From Diplonema japonicum (taxonomy: Eukaryota > Protista > Euglenozoa: Diplonemea), in contig OZ025724.1 in the NCBI GenBank assembly GCA_964019335.1, positions 1-64,000 of the forward strand: a stretch of 64,000 nucleotides of DNA, given 5' to 3'. The notes beneath the pieces are model-generated. The model did no database searches. It was not told where the DNA came from and worked only from the letters and a program-made list of their open reading frames with translations. Shown here one piece after another: positions 18,444 through 28,917 of the stretch. Position 1 is the first letter of the stretch; the number at the start of each line of letters is the position of its first letter. Position numbers and translations under genes: made by a program.

Positions 18444-18980
18444 TTACGTCTGGAGATCTGATGGCCTGAACTTGTGGTGCAGAGGGGCCACCCTTGTGGG
18501 ACGGGGGTGACCCCCCATTCCTCTTCTAGACACCAGGGGATGATGATGAGGGCTTCTTGTAGGTGTTAATAACTCTGGCTCTAGCTCCGGCACTGGCTCA
18601 CACACTATCTTTGGAAGTAGGTGCGCCTCGTTGCTGTGATCAACAATAAGATGGTCATTAGCAGCCTGCCTTGTGTCCTGCATGTGTTCTTCTCTAATCT
18701 GTTCTTCCCGTTTGCTTTGCCGCTTCTCAACTATTCTGGTAACAATTGCTGTCGCACACAACGATACACACAAAAAACTTGAGATCCATATCAGACTTAT
18801 GTCACGCTCGCTTAACTTTGGAGCATCTGTGTCATCACCGGTGCTGTTGTTGTTGTTGTTGTTGCTGCTGCTAGTGCCACCATTTTTCTTCTTACTCTTG
18901 CCACCCTTCTTCCCTTCAACGCCGCTTAAGCACAGCGAGACGAATACCAAAAAGAAGATTGCACAGTTTACCCTGTTCAT
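18444..18980 (-). CDS. Single-pass membrane protein, paralog of 20142-20909 lacking the Cys domain
   Basis: Signal peptide, K-rich/poly-N linker and TM helix. The C-terminus (GMGGHPRPTR.APLHHKFRPSDLQT) and proximal 3' UTR are nearly identical to the neighbour's. Confidence 0.8.
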   Translation of the reverse strand: MNRVNCAIFFLVFVSLCLSGVEGKKGGKSKKKNGGTSSSNNNNNNSTGDDTDAPKLSERDISLIWISSFLCVSLCATAIVTRIVEKRQSKREEQIREEHMQDTRQAANDHLIVDHSNEAHLLPKIVCEPVPELEPELLTPTRSPHHHPLVSRRGMGGHPRPTRVAPLHHKFRPSDLQT

Positions 18981-20141: not shown

Positions 20142-20757
20142 TTACGTCTGGAGATCTGATGGCCTGAACTTGTGGTGCAGAGGGGCCGGCCTTGTGGGAC
20201 GGGGGTGACCTCCCATTCCTCTTCCAGACACCAGGGGATGATGACTAGGGCTTATTGTAGGTGTTGAGAACCTTGGCCCTGACTCTGGTTCCAAATACCT
20301 CACTCGAGACGGCTCACTTCCAACCGTCGGGAGTAGGTCAAATCTGCCGTGAAACTCTGGCTCCGGCTCCGGCACCGGCATTGACTCTGCAGGTGGCTCT
20401 GGCAGTGGCTCTGGCAGTAGGCGCACTTCTTTGTTATAATTAAAAAGATCATCGGCCTCCTGCCTCATTATGTCCTGCCTTTCTTGTTCTCTATCTCGTT
20501 TCGCTTTTATGCGGGTGTGCACTACGATGGCACATATAACTATACAGAAAAAACCTAGGAAACCGAAAAGAAGAATCAGAAACAGGCCAATCTTGAGCGC
20601 TTCGTTGCAATCATCCTCATTTCTGCAGATTCCATCTGCGCAGCAGCCGTGGGTGCAGTCCTTGGCTGCAACCGTGCTGTTTGTAACGCTATCGAAACAC
20701 GCTTCTGTGTCATCACCAGCGCTGCTGTTGTTGTTGTTGTTGTTGTTGCTGTTGTTA

Positions 20758-20795
<38 letters not shown>

Positions 20796-20909
20796 ACTTT
20801 TACCATTTTTCTTCTTACTCTTACTCCTGCCACTTTTCTTCCCTTCAACGCTGCTTAAGCACAGCGAGAGGAAAACGAGAAAGAGGATTGCACAGCTTAC
20901 TCTGTTCAT
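20142..20909 (-). CDS. Cys-rich single-pass membrane protein (6-Cys ectodomain family)
   Basis: Signal peptide, poly-SN/N tract, C..C.HGCC..G.C....DC, TM helix and Pro/Glu-rich tail. Confidence 0.82.
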
Positions 20910-21967
20910 TTTTATTTGTTTTTTTGTTTGTTTGTTTTTGTTATTACTGTCGAAAACAAAAAAAAATACGAACCCGTCCGAAAAGAAATGTCAACAAATG
21001 ACCCTCCCCACGCGGCAGGAAACTTCTAAGTAGAAAAGTTGGCAAGCTGGTGGCACCACTTTGTATGCTTGCACACCACCATATAGGTCAGGTGCGTGTA
21101 TAAACATGTTTTATTTTATTTTATTTTATGCTTCTTTTTGGTTTTTGGCGTTAGGAAATAATATATAACCCAGACCCCCTGTTCTCTTTTTTTTGATCTG
21201 TTATCTCTTTCAATTTCTTTTTTGAAAAATTCTTAACCAGTAAGGGACGACGCGCTAGATTTCTAGCGGCCAGAAAATTAAGATTCTTTGGATACCATAC
21301 CCTTGCACAGAGTAACGTACTTCCCTCGATTTCCTTTCCGTTTCCATCGAAAGTCACTTTTGGCCCTTAGATTAACCTCCAAAAACACCCTCGAAACCAG
21401 TTTTTGGCACGAAAAAAGAAAAAGCTCATATGAGCAGTACTGCTTCAGACGAGTTCGGTTTACTGAGCGAAAAAAAAAAAGAAAGTTACAACCTCAGGAG
21501 ATTGGCTCCAAAAGACACCAATATTGAAAGCCCCGCAGCCGATTTTCACTCGTTTTTTTCTCGAAATTGGAAAAAAAAGGGCTTTTTAAAAAAAACCACA
21601 TTTTCCGGGCCTATGCGGCACCATATATATTTTTTTCGCTAAATACCTTCAACAGTAACCCGACCCTTTATGCACCATAGGTGCTGCGCTATTGGTTTAA
21701 TGCGGGGGGGGGGGGGTAAAAAAGAAGAAAATATATTTGCGACTTGGTTATAGTGGGGAAATGCAGTATGTGACAGCACGATTACACCCTTTTAAAGGTG
21801 AGTCGTGAAAGCCTGCCAAGTCCCCTGTGGTCCCGTAGAGCAAAGTGGAGAGGTAAATAGGGAGAGAGAGAGGTTGGAAACACCGTTGTCTCCACGAAAT
21901 AAAAAAAAACTCAAAGTGCAGGACAAACCCCCTCATGGAGGGCCGCCCTTGGGTGGGTTAGGGGGGG

Positions 21968-24900
21968 TTATCTTTTTATACTCCCCTTCTGGAGCATTGC
22001 TTTCGTTCCAATCGAGGCCTTGAGCGTCTTGCGGAGTCGTGTGATGCGGTCTCGCTTGTAAGCGGCTTTCAGTTCCATCAGCTTGTCGTGAGTGGTGTGG
22101 GTGGCGAAGATGGGCCTCCTGGCGAAACCCATAGCCGTCTTCCCACCTATTGCGATGAGGGACTTCACTCTCTTCTGTTCATCTGCTGGGAAGGGGCGTG
22201 GCTTCTTCCGTGCCCTGCATGCCGCGTTCAGCTTTCTTATCAGTGCTTTGATCTTGCGAGCCCTATCTTCCAGCAGACCCCCCAGTAACTTGCCTGTCGT
22301 CCATTCGAAGTCGATGGCCAATTCCACCGCTGACACTTCAGAGCTGGTGTCCTCCTTCACCCATCGTAGCTGTGACAACCACTGCAGCAGCGGGTTCAAG
22401 AATTCTGCGACGATTCCTCCCACTCCTTCGAGCTCCCCCGCCGTTGGCACGAGGCATCTCCTTCCCTCCACATTGCGTACCCACGGCAGCGGCTGTGTGC
22501 TGGCGTTGTCTATTTGCATGAGCTCCACATCCCGTTTCCCGACCACCACAGCCATGTATCGCTGCAGCTTCTCCAGGTGTGCGAAGACATGCCCCCTCGG
22601 CAGTATCGCGTGCAGCTCCAGACATAGGGGCCATCCTGATCTGTTGCGCAACGGCTCCATTCCGTCTAGTGCCAGTTCCTCTTGTGCACAGGCGCACTCA
22701 TACAGCTGATGGCGGAGTAAGGTCACCGTGTCCGGGTGTGGAGACTTGCACAGGTCGCATCTGAATCCTTGCGTGTGCGATACCTCCGTCGTTGGTGCCT
22801 GGCCCATGTTCTCCTCGTCACCGTTGTCGTCACCTTCAGGCGCCAGTGGGACGCTCTTTCGCTTCGCATTTGCGTGCGGGTTTAGGTAGGGAACCCCTCC
22901 TGCGATCACTCGTCTCAGGCTGTAGGACATGAGCGGGTCCTTGGCCGTCCTCCATAATCGGTTCGTCTTGGGGTCCGCCCCCGGCTCTATCCCGCTTATC
23001 GTGCTCCTCTCGACCGCCAGCGTCCTACTTCGGGCCTTCCTCACCACCTCTCTAAAGATGTGTCCGCGTTCGGCCCAAGATGTGTTGCAACCTAGTAGCT
23101 GCGCCCAACTCCATCCTATTCGGGGAAGCCACCGGCAGACCAGGTTGCCAACCGGCCCCATCGGGATGGAACCCGCGTCATACCCCGCAGCGATCTGCAT
23201 GCATCTCTGCCGTAGCCGACTGTCATCGAGTGCTCCGGATACTACCTTCAGGGAGTGGTACATTACGTAGGAAAGGGGGTCATTGGTGTGCCCCTTCAGC
23301 AGGACTGTGTTTACCGCGGTGGCCGACCGTCCACGGTGATGAGGGCCCCACAGGTTACAAGTGATCTTCGTCGTTAGCTTCTTGAGTGCCTCATCACATG
23401 GAGGGGAGAACGGCCCACTGTATAGGCAAGATGGCAGGACCGTCGTGCTGACCAAGTGTGCTTTGGTTTCGAAAGCAATCCTTGTGCCCCCCAGTCGGTC
23501 CAGCGAGCCAAGCGCCCCCGTGGTCGGTTTGTTCCACGTCGTTCCTGTCCTGCGTGTGTTGATCTTCACCCCCAGTCCGCAGAGGTCTGTCACCGTCTTG
23601 TAGGGTACCGCGACCTCCAAGCCTTTCCTCATCTCCGTTCGGTTTCCTATGACTTTCGACTTGAAATCTTCAGCAGTGCCGAAACCAACAGTCTTCTCCT
23701 TGTTGATTTCCATCCCCGTCAGGTCGCAGAACTCCAATGTCCCATTGACCGCAGCTTGTAGTGAGCCACGCAGCTTTGCCAGCAGGTATGCGTCGTCAGC
23801 GTAGGCTAGCACTTCGGCGTCTGGCGCGACTTGCTCGACTGCCCGCACCATGATGGACAACAGGGCGTTGACGACGATGACTGACAGGGGGCATCCTTGG
23901 AGAATGCCGTTCGTTGTCTCAAATGTTTCTCCCACTCCTATGGGGTACTTGAACCTCCTTGTGATTTGGGTGTACATCCCTTGGAGTGCTCTCCCTATGG
24001 ATTGGTCCATCCCCAGGGCGTCCATGAGGTCGAGAGACAGCCGTTGTGGCACTAGATCGAAGCATTTTCGAAAGTCTAGGGCTAGTCCTTCCAGCGGTTC
24101 TCCTTCCACCAGAGCTAGTTCCAGCTTGGTACATAACTCCATGAGGGCAGTTGTCGTACTGTGTTTGGGTCGAAACCCGTGCTGTCTCGGCGTGATCCAG
24201 CGTTCTTGCCAGTCAAGGACACCCTTCAGCCTCGTACACGCCCACAAGCGGTAGATGGTGCTGGTCACTGTGATGGGACGATGATTCAGTGGTGCTGACC
24301 CCTCACCCTTCGGAATCAGGGACACCAGTGCTGTCGTGATCTGTCTCGGCCACTGGCCTGTTTCCTCGATCAGGTTGAAGAGGTCTGCGAAAGCCTTCAG
24401 GATGCTCGTTGGGAGACGCTTCAGTTCACTCATCCGCCAACCGTCCACGCCACATGCTCCTTTCTCCGGCTTCTTCCTGATCACTTCCCTCAGCTGTTCT
24501 GCTGTGATGGGAGTCCGTGCCATTGGGGCTTTCTTGATCAGGTCCCCGTAACGTTGTGCAAACCGCTCATACTGTGGCTCTTCCTCGAGTGTTCGCGCAC
24601 AGAAGACGCCCGACCACGCGTTCCGCATCACCTTGTCCATTTCCTGTAGGTTCGCCGTCACCCCCCCGTCTGCTACCTCAACCACGTCCGTTCTCTGGTT
24701 TGGGCGGTCTCTGACCCAGGCTGTGATGTGCTTGCGTTCTTTCCCAAAGTCAGCACGGACTGAGCGTTCGTAGGCCTTCGTCTGCATTCTCTTGCGGTAT
24801 TGGAGTAGCTCTGATAGCATTCCCTGAGCGAAGTCCTCTGCTATGTCCAGCTCCTCCCTGATGCCGTCGATACCCCCTGTCGCGTCCACCTGGCAGTTGT

Positions 24901-26157
24901 CAACCTTCAGTTCTTCTCCTAGTGTCGCAATATTTCTGAGGACGTTCCGTAACTCTACCGGCAGCGGACCGCAGTGTCCGTTTTCATAAAGCCTTAGCAT
25001 TTGCTGTTGCGCACTGCGGATCTTGTGCTTCAGCTTTTCCAGTCTTTGTTGTCTGTTCGATGCCGCTCCGACCGCCGACTCCGCCGACCTCGCACTTAGC
25101 TCCGATTTCGTAGGTTCCCGTACTTTGCCTCTCCCGGTGTACACGCTGCGCGTCGGCCCCTTGTACCCATGTAATAGGTACTCCTCTGCGAGGTCTGATA
25201 TCTCCGAGAAAGCTTCGGTGGGCTCCTGTGCTGCTATGAACTCCCGGTACCTCGACTTCTGCATCAGTGCCTTCGCCACCTCGCCAGGCGCCTTCTTGGT
25301 CTTCGGTATCTCCTGTGGGATGGTGTACCTCAGGACTTCTTGACGAAAAGCTGGGATGTTGAGTGTCACCGACAAGCATCGGTGGTCCGACCCGGTGATC
25401 ATATCGCTTACTCCGCAATGTTCGAGACCTTGGGCCGCGATGTTATTCAGCAGGACCCTGTCAATCCTCGTGCTGCAGTTGGTCCTAACGAACGTGTCCT
25501 CCGCCTGTACACCATCCCTTCTTGCACAGAACGCAGCGGCGTCTACCCAGTCTGTCTGTATAGCTTTCCTTAACGTGGGGGATCGTACTTCGTCCGTGTT
25601 GAAATCGCCCACCACGGCCACAGGCACGTCTCCCAGTTCGAACTTAAGACGGCAAAGGATGTAGTGGAGAAGCTCTTCAGGTATTTCGTCTTGGCTTGGT
25701 CCTGACCCGAGTGGCAGTAGACGTTGATCAGGTGAAGCCACCGTTTGCTTCCATCGAGTGAGATCTTCACGTGTGACCACCTGTCCCTGTGCGGCCCATT
25801 CGTTTCACAGCGCACCGCCGTACGTGGTTTTTTCACCAGGGTTCCTAGACCACCCCGTTTCGCTATCGTCAGAGATGTGACACCACTGGACTCCCTGCCT
25901 GGCTGTGGCTTGCTCCAGAATCTGGCGTATCGTTTGCCCCAGTCATCGTCTCTCAGCACGTGTTCGATTTCCAGCTGCGTCTGAGCCGTGAGGGCTGTCT
26001 CCTGGATGCAGAATGCGTCCGGGAGGACGGTGGAGTACTCGCTCAGCCTGTTGTTAAGTGATGAGCCGTTGTGTGTGAAAATGGTGAATTTCTCGTGTTC
26101 TGGCTCTGGTCCGGGGTGGGGTTCGATACCCTGTTCGGTGAGACGTTCAAATTTCAT
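21968..26157 (-). CDS. Retrotransposon ORF2: 2A-like peptide, AP endonuclease, reverse transcriptase, CCHC finger, C-terminal domain (1-nt frameshift near 25685)
   Basis: APE motifs THNG, CIQET, INVY, VVGDFN, TRID and SDH. RT motifs LDFRKCFD, GILQGCPLS and AYADD. CDLC..HQLYEC. ORFs 25570-26157 and 21968-25780 join by a single frame change. Confidence 0.9.
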
Positions 26158-26250: not shown

Positions 26251-28494
26251 TCATTGTTCGCATTGTTCGCACCCGCGGCATTTTACCCTTTTGCAGTCTG
26301 GTAATATGCAGGTCTGTGCTGGGTTGTTCTTTGTGATGTTCCCGCCGCAGTAGTGGCATACACCCTTCCAGCATTGATATGTCCCGTTGTAGACGTGGCA
26401 GATGCCCTTGCCCAGGCAGTCGTCAATGTCGGCGGGGCCCTCGTCCAAGTCGATGTCGGTGTCATCGTCAGTTGGGGGGGGACCCAAGTCATCTTCGGAG
26501 TCGTCCATCATCTCCTCCCCGGCAGCAGGGCGCATCATCGGGGCCCGGTTCCCGGGGACGGGCTTCGAGAGCGTCGCTTCCGTGAGTCTCTTAATTTGCT
26601 CGGTGAGCGCGGCCATCTGGATGTGCATCTGCCGGACCTCCTCCCGTAGCTCCGCGTTCTCCCTCCGTAGACTGACCACCTCAGCCGGCGGCTTGACGTC
26701 GCTGACCGGTTCCCCTGCAAGTTTACGAAGTGCGTTTTCGATTGCTGTGAGGCGGTCCTCAAAGGCCGGGGGATCGGCTTTCTTCGATGTTGTGGGCGAC
26801 TTACCGGACTTCGGTGGGGCGGCTTTACCCGTAGGGGCAACCTTCTTTCCTGCAGCTGGTGGTTTGTGGTCTGGTTGAGAGGACCCCGTCACTGCTCCGA
26901 GGTACGACTTGCCCGCGTTGTTTGTGGTCCCCGTTTTCGGCCTTCCCCAGGACTGAGCTGGCGGTGTCTTTTTGGTGGGTGGGTTTCTAACGTCGGGAGC
27001 TATCCTGCAGTTGAGGACCCGCCCAGTTGGGGACGTGATCTTCAGTGACGTGGTTGGGGGTTCGCCCCCTCGGATGTACCAGCACCTCATGCTGTTGCAC
27101 CATCCGCCGTGTAGTGGGACGGCCTCCCACTTTATCGCCTCGAGTATCGCCTCAACGTGTTCGGCTCCGCACTGCCCGTACAGTCCCGACAAACGCCACC
27201 TGGGCTCCCCATGCTGCCCGCGTTGTCGCTCCTCCTCGCCTAATACCTTGTCGAGGAGCGTGGTTTTCCTCTCCTCCGATGTCCTCACCCCGAGACGGCC
27301 GTCGGATTCGCGCAGCGCTAACCCCTGCTTCTCAGTCTCCGCCAGCTCGAGTGCCTCTTCCAGAGTGATCTCCTTCGGGAGCCAGGCGACAGGGGACTTC
27401 TCCACGTCCTTCGGCTTGACGAAGATCCCCATCTTCCCGGATGCACTTACGAGGCGGCGGCGGTTCTCGGTTGCGATCGTGACGAGCACGTCAACCCTTG
27501 GGGCCGGTCCATCCACGTACTTGTCGATCCTGTGGATCGTCTTACAGCCCAGCATCTCCTGGACCAGCTTGCGGGGTTCGGAGGTCACCCTCTCCCAAGT
27601 CTGGGCTGGGGTGTGCGTCTTCGAGACGACGAAAGCTACCCGCGTGTACATCGCGGCCAGGTCAATACCCACCGTGTTTTTGTTTTTTTGAGAGCGCGAG
27701 ATCTTTCCGCTCAGTACGTGCAAGAACATTGTCCTGTTCGAGTACTCTCCAGCCGCCTTGAGCACGACGTCGTGTTCGTATCGACCCTTGCCGTTGCGTT
27801 TGAGGAGGACTGCCTTGTTCCCGTCCCAGGGCATCTTTTCTGCCTCCTCCACGTTGACCTCGGTCGCGATGGCTATGCCATCTTTCCCTGCCACCAGCTC
27901 TTCCCACTCTATGAAGGGTAGGTCGAACTGTCCCTGCTCGAGGAGCCAGCATTTCTTTGCCTGCGGTTCCTTCCGTGGTGGCTTGCTGTTCGGTCCCCTC
28001 CATGCCTTCGCCTCTCCGTCTGAGGTTGGAATCCCGACCCGTGGCAGCTTGAACTGCTGCATAGCTTTCTTCAGCACGTTCACGTTGAACGGCTCCGTGG
28101 CGTTGAGGTATGCCCGGCCGTCGAAGGCGACGTGGATGGGCTGCTTCTTGGACTTGGACTCTCCCACGATAGGGGAGACGATGAGGGCGCCGTCGTCGGC
28201 CGTAATCAGGTGGATGTCGGTCTTCAGTGCGCGGGCGGTGGCTTGGATGGTAACCGGGTCCGCGGCGGTCCCCTCCCTGGCGTGCTGGGAGCAGTACAGG
28301 TCGTAGTCTCCGATGACACTCGCCCGGTACTCCTCGCTTCCTCGCAGCTCTTGTATCATGCGGCGCCTAACGTCGCTCCCCTTCTTTCCCGTCTTCTCTC
28401 CGACCACTCCGTAGAAGGAGTTTCCGTTTCCAATCCCGTACCCCTTCCCGCGGGCTGTCATCCCGTACCCCTTCAAAGCTTTGTGAACGTCCAT
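26251..28494 (-). CDS. Retrotransposon ORF1: N-terminal OTU-like domain, central region, coiled coil, C-terminal Cys/His cluster
   Basis: 747-aa intact ORF. GNGNSFY...IQATARALKTDIHLI...HVAFDGRAY resembles OTU motifs. LRRENAELREEVRQM is a coiled coil. The C-terminus is Cys-rich. Confidence 0.82.
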   Translation of the reverse strand: MDVHKALKGYGMTARGKGYGIGNGNSFYGVVGEKTGKKGSDVRRRMIQELRGSEEYRASVIGDYDLYCSQHAREGTAADPVTIQATARALKTDIHLITADDGALIVSPIVGESKSKKQPIHVAFDGRAYLNATEPFNVNVLKKAMQQFKLPRVGIPTSDGEAKAWRGPNSKPPRKEPQAKKCWLLEQGQFDLPFIEWEELVAGKDGIAIATEVNVEEAEKMPWDGNKAVLLKRNGKGRYEHDVVLKAAGEYSNRTMFLHVLSGKISRSQKNKNTVGIDLAAMYTRVAFVVSKTHTPAQTWERVTSEPRKLVQEMLGCKTIHRIDKYVDGPAPRVDVLVTIATENRRRLVSASGKMGIFVKPKDVEKSPVAWLPKEITLEEALELAETEKQGLALRESDGRLGVRTSEERKTTLLDKVLGEEERQRGQHGEPRWRLSGLYGQCGAEHVEAILEAIKWEAVPLHGGWCNSMRCWYIRGGEPPTTSLKITSPTGRVLNCRIAPDVRNPPTKKTPPAQSWGRPKTGTTNNAGKSYLGAVTGSSQPDHKPPAAGKKVAPTGKAAPPKSGKSPTTSKKADPPAFEDRLTAIENALRKLAGEPVSDVKPPAEVVSLRRENAELREEVRQMHIQMAALTEQIKRLTEATLSKPVPGNRAPMMRPAAGEEMMDDSEDDLGPPPTDDDTDIDLDEGPADIDDCLGKGICHVYNGTYQCWKGVCHYCGGNITKNNPAQTCILPDCKRVKCRGCEQCEQ

Positions 28495-28536
28495 CTTAGA
28501 CTGACGCGGTTGCTTAGATTGTCAATGTGTTTGCTG

Positions 28537-28611
28537 TGATCTGATATGATCTGATATGATCTGATATGACTCGATTTTTCTTCTCTTCTCTTCTCTTCTC
28601 TTCTCTTCTCC
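28537..28611 (-). repeat. Tandem microrepeats in the retroelement 5' UTR: (GAGAA)~6 and (ATCATATCAG)~3
   Basis: Directly visible on + as (ctgatatgat)n and (ttctc)n. Confidence 0.9.
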
Positions 28612-28706
28612 TTTACGTTGCTGATCTGTGTCGCGCTTCAACTTCCAATATTTGTATTTTCTTTTCAAACCGTTGCTGTGTGAACTTTATTGGCACGGTC
28701 GGACAC

Positions 28707-28745
28707 CAATAAAGTACAGAAACTGTAGCTTTAGAATCGTTGGTG
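28707..28745 (-). other. Genomic copy of the euglenozoan/diplonemid spliced leader (39 nt)
   Basis: Minus strand reads cACCAACGATTCTAAAGCTACAGTTTCTGTACTTTATTG. It contains the conserved euglenozoan SL 3' core CAGTTTCTGTACTTTATTG and matches the diplonemid SL as I recall it at about 36/39 nt. Confidence 0.9.
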
Positions 28746-28917
28746 GAAAAAAAAAAAAAGAAATGAGGCTTTGATTGCAACCCTAGCCGGGGCGACCCGG
28801 GTAACCAAGATGCTGCGCGTCGTTCGCCTCGTTCGTGGGGGTCAACAGCGAACAACACATCTGATGTATTTCTTACATTTCCATATCCACCACCAAAAAA
28901 GAAAAAAAAAGAAGAAG

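Follow-up and report, generated by a model that had tools for sequence, protein, structure and literature searches.

A LINE clade of Diplonema japonicum begins with the host spliced leader and carries a complementary arm that can pair across the leader junction

The window analysed here, the first 64,000 nucleotides of contig OZ025724.1 of Diplonema japonicum, harbors a ~6.84-kb APE/RT LINE that lies on the minus strand and starts at position 28746. A copy of the spliced leader (SL) stands at its 5' end, and a second repeat lies immediately upstream. The parts of the locus, in the 5' to 3' direction of the element, are as follows:

28747..28894, minus strand: SINE-like element of the c-family upstream of the LINE, internally shortened and without an SL, its T13 end abutting the LINE
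28759-28747, minus strand: T13 tract, the 3' tail of the c-family element
28745..28746, minus strand: two extra C at the 5' junction; a CC before the SL is shared by many sibling copies and occurs in another family too
28707..28744, minus strand: SL copy, SL nt 2-39, with no difference from the SL RNA gene exon of this genome
28684..28715, minus strand: hairpin across the junction of the SL with GT (arm 28715-28706, 12-nt loop 28705-28694, anti-SL arm 28693-28684)
28495..28706, minus strand: 5' UTR of 212 nt, with a GT(G/A)TC(C)GACCGTGCC block, the anti-SL arm, a CGGTTTGAAAAG motif, GAGAA repeats and three TCATATCAGA repeats
26251..28494, minus strand: ORF1, 747 aa with a Cys-rich C-terminus, its ATG at 28494 lying 212 nt after the SL
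21968..26157, minus strand: ORF2, APE and RT, in two pieces (26157-25570 and 25780-21968) with a frame change inside the APE near 25675
21901..21967, minus strand: 3' UTR, ending ...CTGCACTTTGAG and T9 (21909-21901)

An earlier note on this DNA, made from its letters, had described a 39-nt SL copy ~210 nt 5' of ORF1 and directly after a T13 tract. The SL, the GT and the 212-nt distance were all confirmed, but the first A of the leader is missing, leaving 38 of its 39 bases, and the two C are extra. The T13 tract is likewise present, though as the tail of the c-family element rather than merely as target DNA, and the CC stands between it and the leader. Directly 3' of the SL, on the minus strand, come a G at 28706 and a T at 28705; the GT(G/A)TC(C)GACCGTGCC block and the CGGTTTGAAAAG motif are the conserved parts of the 5' UTR. 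The window copy of the c-family is collinear with SL-capped copies elsewhere (L002, L006 and L020), which end in ...CAATCAAAGCCCCATTT and a T-run. The family, SINE-like and non-coding, measures ~340 nt from its SL head (the SL followed by GTGGTGG or GGTGGTGG) to its T-run tail, and in public contigs its 5' part is found at far higher depth than the LINE.

The product of ORF1 had no Pfam match, and that of ORF2 matched Exo_endo_phos (the APE), in two pieces, and RVT_1 (E=5e-21), with no RNase H domain detected beside APE and RT. Eight sibling copies, 96-99% identical over the ORF2 stretch, carry an uninterrupted 1,428-aa ORF2 frame, so the frame break is private to the window copy. Homology with other copies ceases at ~21903-21897, the 3' end of the LINE being a T-run, not poly(A), with a 3' flank of T9 and unique DNA. 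As the earlier note had stated, this is an APE element with no SL at its 3' flank; T-run flanks stand where the halves of an SL gene might have stood. A first-look search gave 757 candidate 3' ends vs ~60 5' ends, which suggests that the genome holds many 5'-truncated copies. The element thus shows the traits of APE-type non-LTR retrotransposons, namely an ORF1, an APE/RT ORF2, many 5'-truncated copies and variable target flanks. Its closest RT relatives are LINEs of Diplonema papillatum, with ~41% identity, and ORFs from EukProt transcriptomes, which reach 89%. On the minus strand, at 26251-26300 and 21930-21967, the sequences directly behind the ORF1 stop and the ORF2 stop, respectively, both contain CTCCATGAGGG and then a C-rich run.

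Elsewhere in the window, two paralogous ORFs of 178 and 255 aa lie on the minus strand at 18444-18980 and 20142-20909. Both have a signal-peptide-like N-terminus, an Asn/Ser-rich stretch and a hydrophobic segment, and their C-termini are near-identical (...HHPLVS.RGMGGHPRPTR.APLHHKFRPSDLQT); they appear to encode two small membrane proteins in tandem.

The host SL, as defined by the SL RNA genes of this genome, is 39 nt long and reads AACCAACG...TTATTG (also written AACCAACGATTCTAAAG...TTATTG), while the published Diplonema SL differs from it by 2 nt (PMC3795323). Its 19-nt core occurs at 217 dispersed places in the 62.5-Mb assembly of 132 contigs. True SL RNA genes make up one class of these (L011, L029, L086 and L092): they have the full AACC start, a common upstream block (...CTCTAAGCCTTATCTGGGTTTGGAGAAAGAGGTYCGGGAGGTT, conserved over >40 nt), an intron of ~100 nt that begins GTACCCAATC... 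and contains a U-rich Sm-like site and a terminal stem, and a T6-9 terminator at their end, and they are found paired ~350 bp apart (C15, C59). In public reads, the SL RNA intron and the gene upstream block are the main alternative continuations of the SL. Rfam returned nothing relevant for the whole window at the gathering threshold, and nothing relevant and no ribozyme for the 5' 350 nt of the LINE at E<=10; it had no match for a true SL RNA gene either, so it is silent on such SL RNAs.

A query of 326 nt, comprising the UTR and the start of ORF1, returned 13 near-full matches and many subfamily matches, all of them preceded by the SL; the question raised by the earlier note, whether full-length copies begin with the SL, could thus be answered for essentially all those found. 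By pattern matching, which gives lower bounds, the full SL is joined to GT(G/A)TC(C)GACCGTGCC in ~42 copies, a T-run passes straight into SL nt 24/27-39 in ~15 copies, and a full SL is followed by a partial second SL, a relic, in 4 copies. The class in which a T-run runs into SL nt 24/27-39 is best read as 5' junctions formed via microhomology of a T-run target with the UUU of the SL. The flanks of the SL-headed copies are unrelated, T-rich and variable from copy to copy. Even the youngest copies, 100% identical over the 326 nt, vary at the extreme 5' end, which takes the forms CC+ACCAACG, CC+AACCAACG, ACCAACG and CCAACG; the CC+ACC form also occurs in an unrelated family. Since the 5'-most SL bases vary among otherwise identical copies, every insertion forms this end afresh, from a template RNA that must have ended at the cap-proximal bases of the SL. 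Five SL-headed copies that are 100% identical over the 326 nt carry an uninterrupted 1,428-aa ORF2, and the clade is recently active. No subfamily-specific substitutions were found in the SL, although the UTRs are unalignable beyond ~40 nt. A search of the 62.5-Mb assembly for an SL-less progenitor, in which AG would directly precede GT(G/A)TC...GACCGTGCC, found none, the sole AGGTGTCGACCGTG match being without the following CC. In ~42 copies from several subfamilies, the SL is therefore the element's own 5' terminus.

The family-wide junction also bears on whether the locus might be an orphan or true SL RNA gene that lies next to the element by chance, or an insertion into such a gene of the kind made by CRE, SLACS and CZAR. 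An SL followed by GT does resemble an SL gene. The ~100 nt downstream of the leader are not the SL RNA intron, however, which is one of the outcomes that the earlier note had named as undoing its reading: the element 5' UTR has no similarity to the intron, with an alignment score of -8.5 that is at the level of shuffled sequence (mean -10.1, SD 4.0). Copies of the element lack the upstream block and the T-run terminator of SL genes, and the sequence after their SL runs into ORF1. The same junction recurs in ~42 copies with different flanks, the endonuclease is an APE and not an RLE, the 3' flank holds no half of an SL gene, and in place of a CRE-type fixed insertion point we found a 5' flank made of a T-run or SINE tail and an SL complete from nt 2. 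The SL-gene explanation is refuted by the family-wide junction and the unrelated intron, and we regard its probability as negligible; the claim of the earlier note that the SL belongs to the element was upheld.

The same note had proposed that the 3' end of the SL, together with the G that follows it, pairs with sequence 12 nt downstream, and exactly this arrangement is present. The arm ACTTTATTGG (28715-28706; SL nt 31-39 plus G) and CCAATAAAGT (28693-28684) are perfect complements, yielding a 10-bp hairpin with a 12-nt loop. A perfect complement of at least 10 nt to any part of the SL plus G arose in 1.2% of 20,000 shuffles of the 212-nt 5' UTR, so that the hairpin taken alone is unusual but not extreme; weight is added by its retention in nearly all subfamilies. 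The 10-mer was expected in other copies and was found there: the anti-SL arm is retained in the GTGTCC, GTATCG and GTCGCT subfamilies, and its few variants (CCGATAAAG, CCAATGAAG and CTGATAAAGT) all consist of A>G or C>U changes, which preserve pairing as G.U. In one variant, L016, the arm is lost. Because the SL side of the hairpin is invariant, compensatory change is impossible and a covariation count is uninformative; in the alignment used for that count, the divergent subfamily L015 is shifted by one column. The SL also folds on itself into a rival hairpin (nt 13-36, with additional pairing of nt 2-6 with nt 37-41), and folding is ambiguous, the MFE and centroid structures disagreeing and the z-score being 0.08. 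The hairpin loop contains GACCG, complementary to a conserved downstream CGGUU, and the two could, on the strength of their sequence conservation, form a pseudoknot. A marine metagenome scan for the SL followed by GT and the anti-SL arm gave no matches.

Besides the LINE clade, at least five repeat families are SL-capped: two related telomere-repeat-associated families, the c-family, two G-rich families and retrogene-like units. At the founding junctions of six independent SL-capped families, the LINE clade included, the first base after the leader is G in 6/6 and the first two are GT in 4/6, vs 19% and 10%, respectively, among 96 environmental SL-mRNAs/transcripts; the probability of a G start in all six families is ~5e-5. 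When the true SL RNA and the sequences of most families are folded, the +1 G and +2 U lengthen the helix of SL nt 2-6 with nt 37-41. Two explanations suit this G/GT rule: the 5' domain may be under selection to resemble that of the SL RNA, or the template may have been switched where exon and intron of the SL RNA meet.

Two of the SL-headed families, a and b (the SL followed by GTCGTT... or GTCGTC...), lie at contig ends (loci L065, L067, L084, L091 and L094; contigs C24, C43, C58 and C60) next to arrayed copies of an 8-nt repeat, (CCCGCAAA)n, often standing head-to-tail after the A-run of another element. Their appearance is that of retroelements associated with telomeres, and the neighbouring repeat is telomere-like but unusual. 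A further setting was seen in metagenomes, where four loci (L145, L149, L189 and L197) on genomic-looking contigs of 3.8-13.8 kb contain a full internal SL with UTR/ORF-like sequence directly behind it. These share an A/T-rich motif (AAAAATGAAT / AAAATTGATT) ~20 nt upstream of the SL, which we take to resemble giant-virus early promoters, and they could represent a virus or gene set with a DNA-encoded host leader.

The copies with more than one leader hold a record of how leaders were added. The SL has only two AGs, at nt 16-17 and nt 22-23, and every relic begins right after one of them: after AG17 in L043 (C60), and after AG23 in L031/C102, C83:358320, L017/L026, L061 and L091. L031/C102, L043/C60 and C83:358320 belong to the LINE clade and L017, L026, L061 and L091 to other families, amounting to at least five independent events in three families, whereas the window copy has a single SL and no relic. 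The SL was also found joined after internal AGs of the UTR, namely after CTCAG in L049, ACCAG in L068 and AAAG in L090. A relic that starts right after the SL's own AG marks a genomic SL that itself served as a trans-splicing acceptor. Transcripts made from SL-bearing copies are indeed trans-spliced, and the relic copies are proof that at least some source transcripts began 5' of the SL.

Other junctions are of a different kind. Four do not follow AG and show G/TG microhomology (L062, L079, L009 and L045). At L004 (G000:C2, ~150.5 kb), the SL RNA exon from nt 2 and its intron up to ...GGAACT are fused to unrelated sequence, with no gene-type upstream block and with an A36 run ~26 nt upstream of the SL; this locus looks like an SL RNA retro-pseudogene, a template-switch chimera. 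Together, the non-AG microhomology junctions and L004 indicate that in this genome SLs are added by template switching of the RT as well. An SL variant, AACAATTC (G8>A), heads both L001 and L062, which belong to unrelated families; it hints at a variant SL RNA gene as the donor, which would favour addition from RNA over inheritance in these two families. In metatranscriptomes, L098, L196, L211, L215 and other loci contain tandem leaders in which TTATTG is joined to ACGATTC or CGATTC, so that SL nt 39 is directly followed by SL nt 6-7. Such joints probably arose in library preparation, when the RT jumped at the modified cap-proximal bases, and their occurrence suggests that stops close to nt 5 are frequent, as are free ends of the SL exon.

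The earlier note had left two alternatives for the leader, copying of a trans-spliced element RNA to its very 5' end or an SL stably carried by the element; both have support, and they are probably two stages of one history. The reading we prefer, to which we give about an even chance, is that the element took its SL from a trans-spliced RNA and now passes it on as part of its own DNA, with the 5' end of the element RNA at the start of the SL. The leader would first have been gained by reverse transcription of a trans-spliced element mRNA all the way to the end. From then on the SL would be inherited as DNA, the SL-bearing copies would themselves serve as sources, and productive template RNAs would start at SL nt 1-3 of these copies, the simplest way being that sequence inside the element directs initiation; the element would thereby make a leader-bearing RNA without need for an acceptor site. 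A nematode SL gene has an intragenic promoter; here the 5' end could be set by internal initiation, by renewal at a non-canonical UG acceptor or by processing. The anti-SL arm would pair across the recreated junction of the SL with GU, and its likeliest role may be to block this junction as a splice donor or to mimic the 5' domain of the SL RNA. Masking of the G-GT donor by the hairpin is a reasonable inference. Cis-splicing from that donor to the ATCAG repeats at 28537-28569, also put forward in the earlier note, found no support: the sequence upstream of these repeats is purine-rich (GAGAA repeats) with no pyrimidine tract, and our search found no genomic retrocopies joining the SL to them.

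Inheritance is favoured by the lack of any SL-less AG-GT(G/A)TC copy in the assembly, by the dominant junction (UUG followed by GUGUCC), which has no AG, by the scarcity of relic copies, which would dominate under read-through with AG acceptors and yet amount to ~4/46 (~9%) of those headed by the SL, and by the arm itself, since complementarity to the 3' end of the SL makes sense only if the SL is a constant part of the RNA. Against it, the upstream flank is only target DNA or a SINE T-run, and the SL RNA promoters of trypanosomatids lie upstream of the gene; an invariant SL is equally expected if it is renewed in each cycle. The upstream transcript starts recorded by the relics, and the SLs added by template switching, also count against it. 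The sequencing runs that hold the sequence do so only in Logan contigs of uncertain kind, and the presence of the SL-gene upstream region in them indicates that these contigs are probably DNA. One joint in a single contig, 28498 to 28735 (depth 8), was set aside, as its ends are not splice sites. Avoidance of T-runs on the sense strand, which would point to termination at T-runs, was not significant (0 runs of T>=5 vs 0.54 expected, with T making up only 16% of the strand).

Beyond inheritance as such, the SL and anti-SL module may be a mobile mimic of the SL RNA, an idea we hold tentatively: it would be transcribed from its first base, receive the cap modifications of the leader and yield a translatable RNA without trans-splicing. 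The anti-SL hairpin would then stop the spliceosome from removing the leader, and the G/GU rule would reflect the fold of the SL RNA 5' domain (nt 2-6 with nt 37-41).

Renewal of the SL in each cycle, by trans-splicing of read-through transcripts, is an unlikely competitor to inheritance. The sites used would be a canonical AG in SL-less masters or the non-canonical UUG that ends the embedded SL, with the pyrimidine-rich 3' half of the SL and the upstream T-run acting as polypyrimidine tract. Trans-splicing is indeed recorded by the relics after AG17 and AG23 and by the internal AG junctions, the T-run flanks would make good polypyrimidine tracts, the SL is 100% canonical in all subfamilies, and the junction of L062 follows CTG. 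Apart from the missing masters and the few relics already mentioned, which both speak against it, renewal leaves the G or GT start of all founding junctions unexplained, and UG acceptors are rare where they are known. That start is what addition during reverse transcription would account for, the RT switching from the 5' end of the element RNA to the exon-intron boundary of the SL RNA, or to a free exon, through G/GU microhomology, with products resembling U6/L1 chimeras. G and GT are the first bases of the SL RNA intron, and mRNAs have no such bias; the GTA start of one subfamily and the GTAG of the retrogene-like family even match the intron start GTA, and the four non-AG junctions with G/TG microhomology and the exon-intron fusion at L004 point the same way. 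Such switching would, however, require an RNA 5' end exactly at GUGUCC in every cycle despite the SL that lies upstream in the source DNA, with no cutting process evident there; it does not explain the conservation of the anti-SL arm, and a precise switch inside a structured, protein-bound SL RNA seems unlikely to have happened ~42 times. We consider it doubtful as the account of the LINE clade. Least probable among the readings in which the leader belongs to the element, and in our view improbable outright, is that the SL and anti-SL arm form a self-cleaving HDV-like ribozyme or a processing signal that frees the 5' end at SL nt 1, like Pr77. The possible pseudoknot between GACCG and CGGUU would suit it, as would the promoter and ribozyme within the first 77 nt of L1Tc/ingi (PMC12278014); against it, Rfam gave no ribozyme match even at the relaxed threshold, the invariant SL side offers no covariation support, and the element opens with 39 nt of host SL, a sequence with no known cleavage activity.

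The D. japonicum elements have parallels in several known systems. Like the DinoSL retrogenes of dinoflagellates ('mRNA recycling'; PMC6050394, PMC5585692), they carry a DNA-encoded leader at the 5' end of a retrocopy and, in sibling copies and other families, relic leaders downstream of a newer full leader. DinoSL relics mark retrocopies and have been proposed as promoters, their signature being relics at leader AGs together with junctions at internal AGs (PMC6050394). Whereas DinoSL tags host genes, in D. japonicum it is autonomous LINEs and SINE-like repeats that bear the leader and multiply together with it; moreover, the organism is a euglenozoan with a 39-nt SL, the LINE clade has a conserved anti-SL hairpin, and the junction follows the G/GT rule. 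A physical association of a LINE with SL sequence is shared with the CRE clade of trypanosomatids (SLACS, CZAR, CRE1/2) and NeSL-1 of nematodes. Those elements insert site-specifically into SL RNA genes by means of a restriction-like endonuclease and have a poly(A) end (PMC12278014), whereas the D. japonicum LINE has an APE, uses T-run targets genome-wide, places the SL first and ends in a T-run.

The INGI/L1Tc elements are a further parallel, being APE-type LINEs from a euglenozoan that trans-splices, in which a conserved 5' module supplies a usable 5' end; the module of L1Tc combines an internal promoter and a ribozyme, and its transcripts are unspliced (PMC1874656, PMC12278014). In D. japonicum the host SL and the anti-SL arm stand in place of Pr77 as the module, the element ends in a T-run, RNase H was not detected, and the RT is nearest to those of Diplonema LINEs (~41%). 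Given that its first 39 nt are the SL, the 5' end of this LINE is unlikely to be identical with Pr77. U6/L1 and other snRNA-LINE chimeras, which arise from RT template switching (10.1101/2025.02.02.635956), likewise have the sequence of a small spliceosomal-type RNA at the 5' end of LINE-made copies, and L004 and the non-AG junctions of D. japonicum resemble them. The LINE clade differs from such chimeras in having the exon only, with one fixed junction in all subfamilies and a complementary arm inside the element.

To summarize what these data mean for diplonemids, leader-tagged retrocopies, so far documented for dinoflagellate host genes, extend to Euglenozoa and to autonomous retrotransposons, and dispersed SL copies in such genomes should not be annotated as SL RNA genes. 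The reverse transcriptase of the LINE reads across the leader and ends only 0-2 nt from the cap, and the relics at the SL's own AGs constitute a built-in record of retrotransposition cycles. The arrangement offers a testable idea of how a mobile element may gain a translatable 5' end where every mRNA needs a trans-spliced leader, and if the first ~100 nt of the element direct initiation, they would provide a compact promoter/leader cassette for diplonemid genetics.
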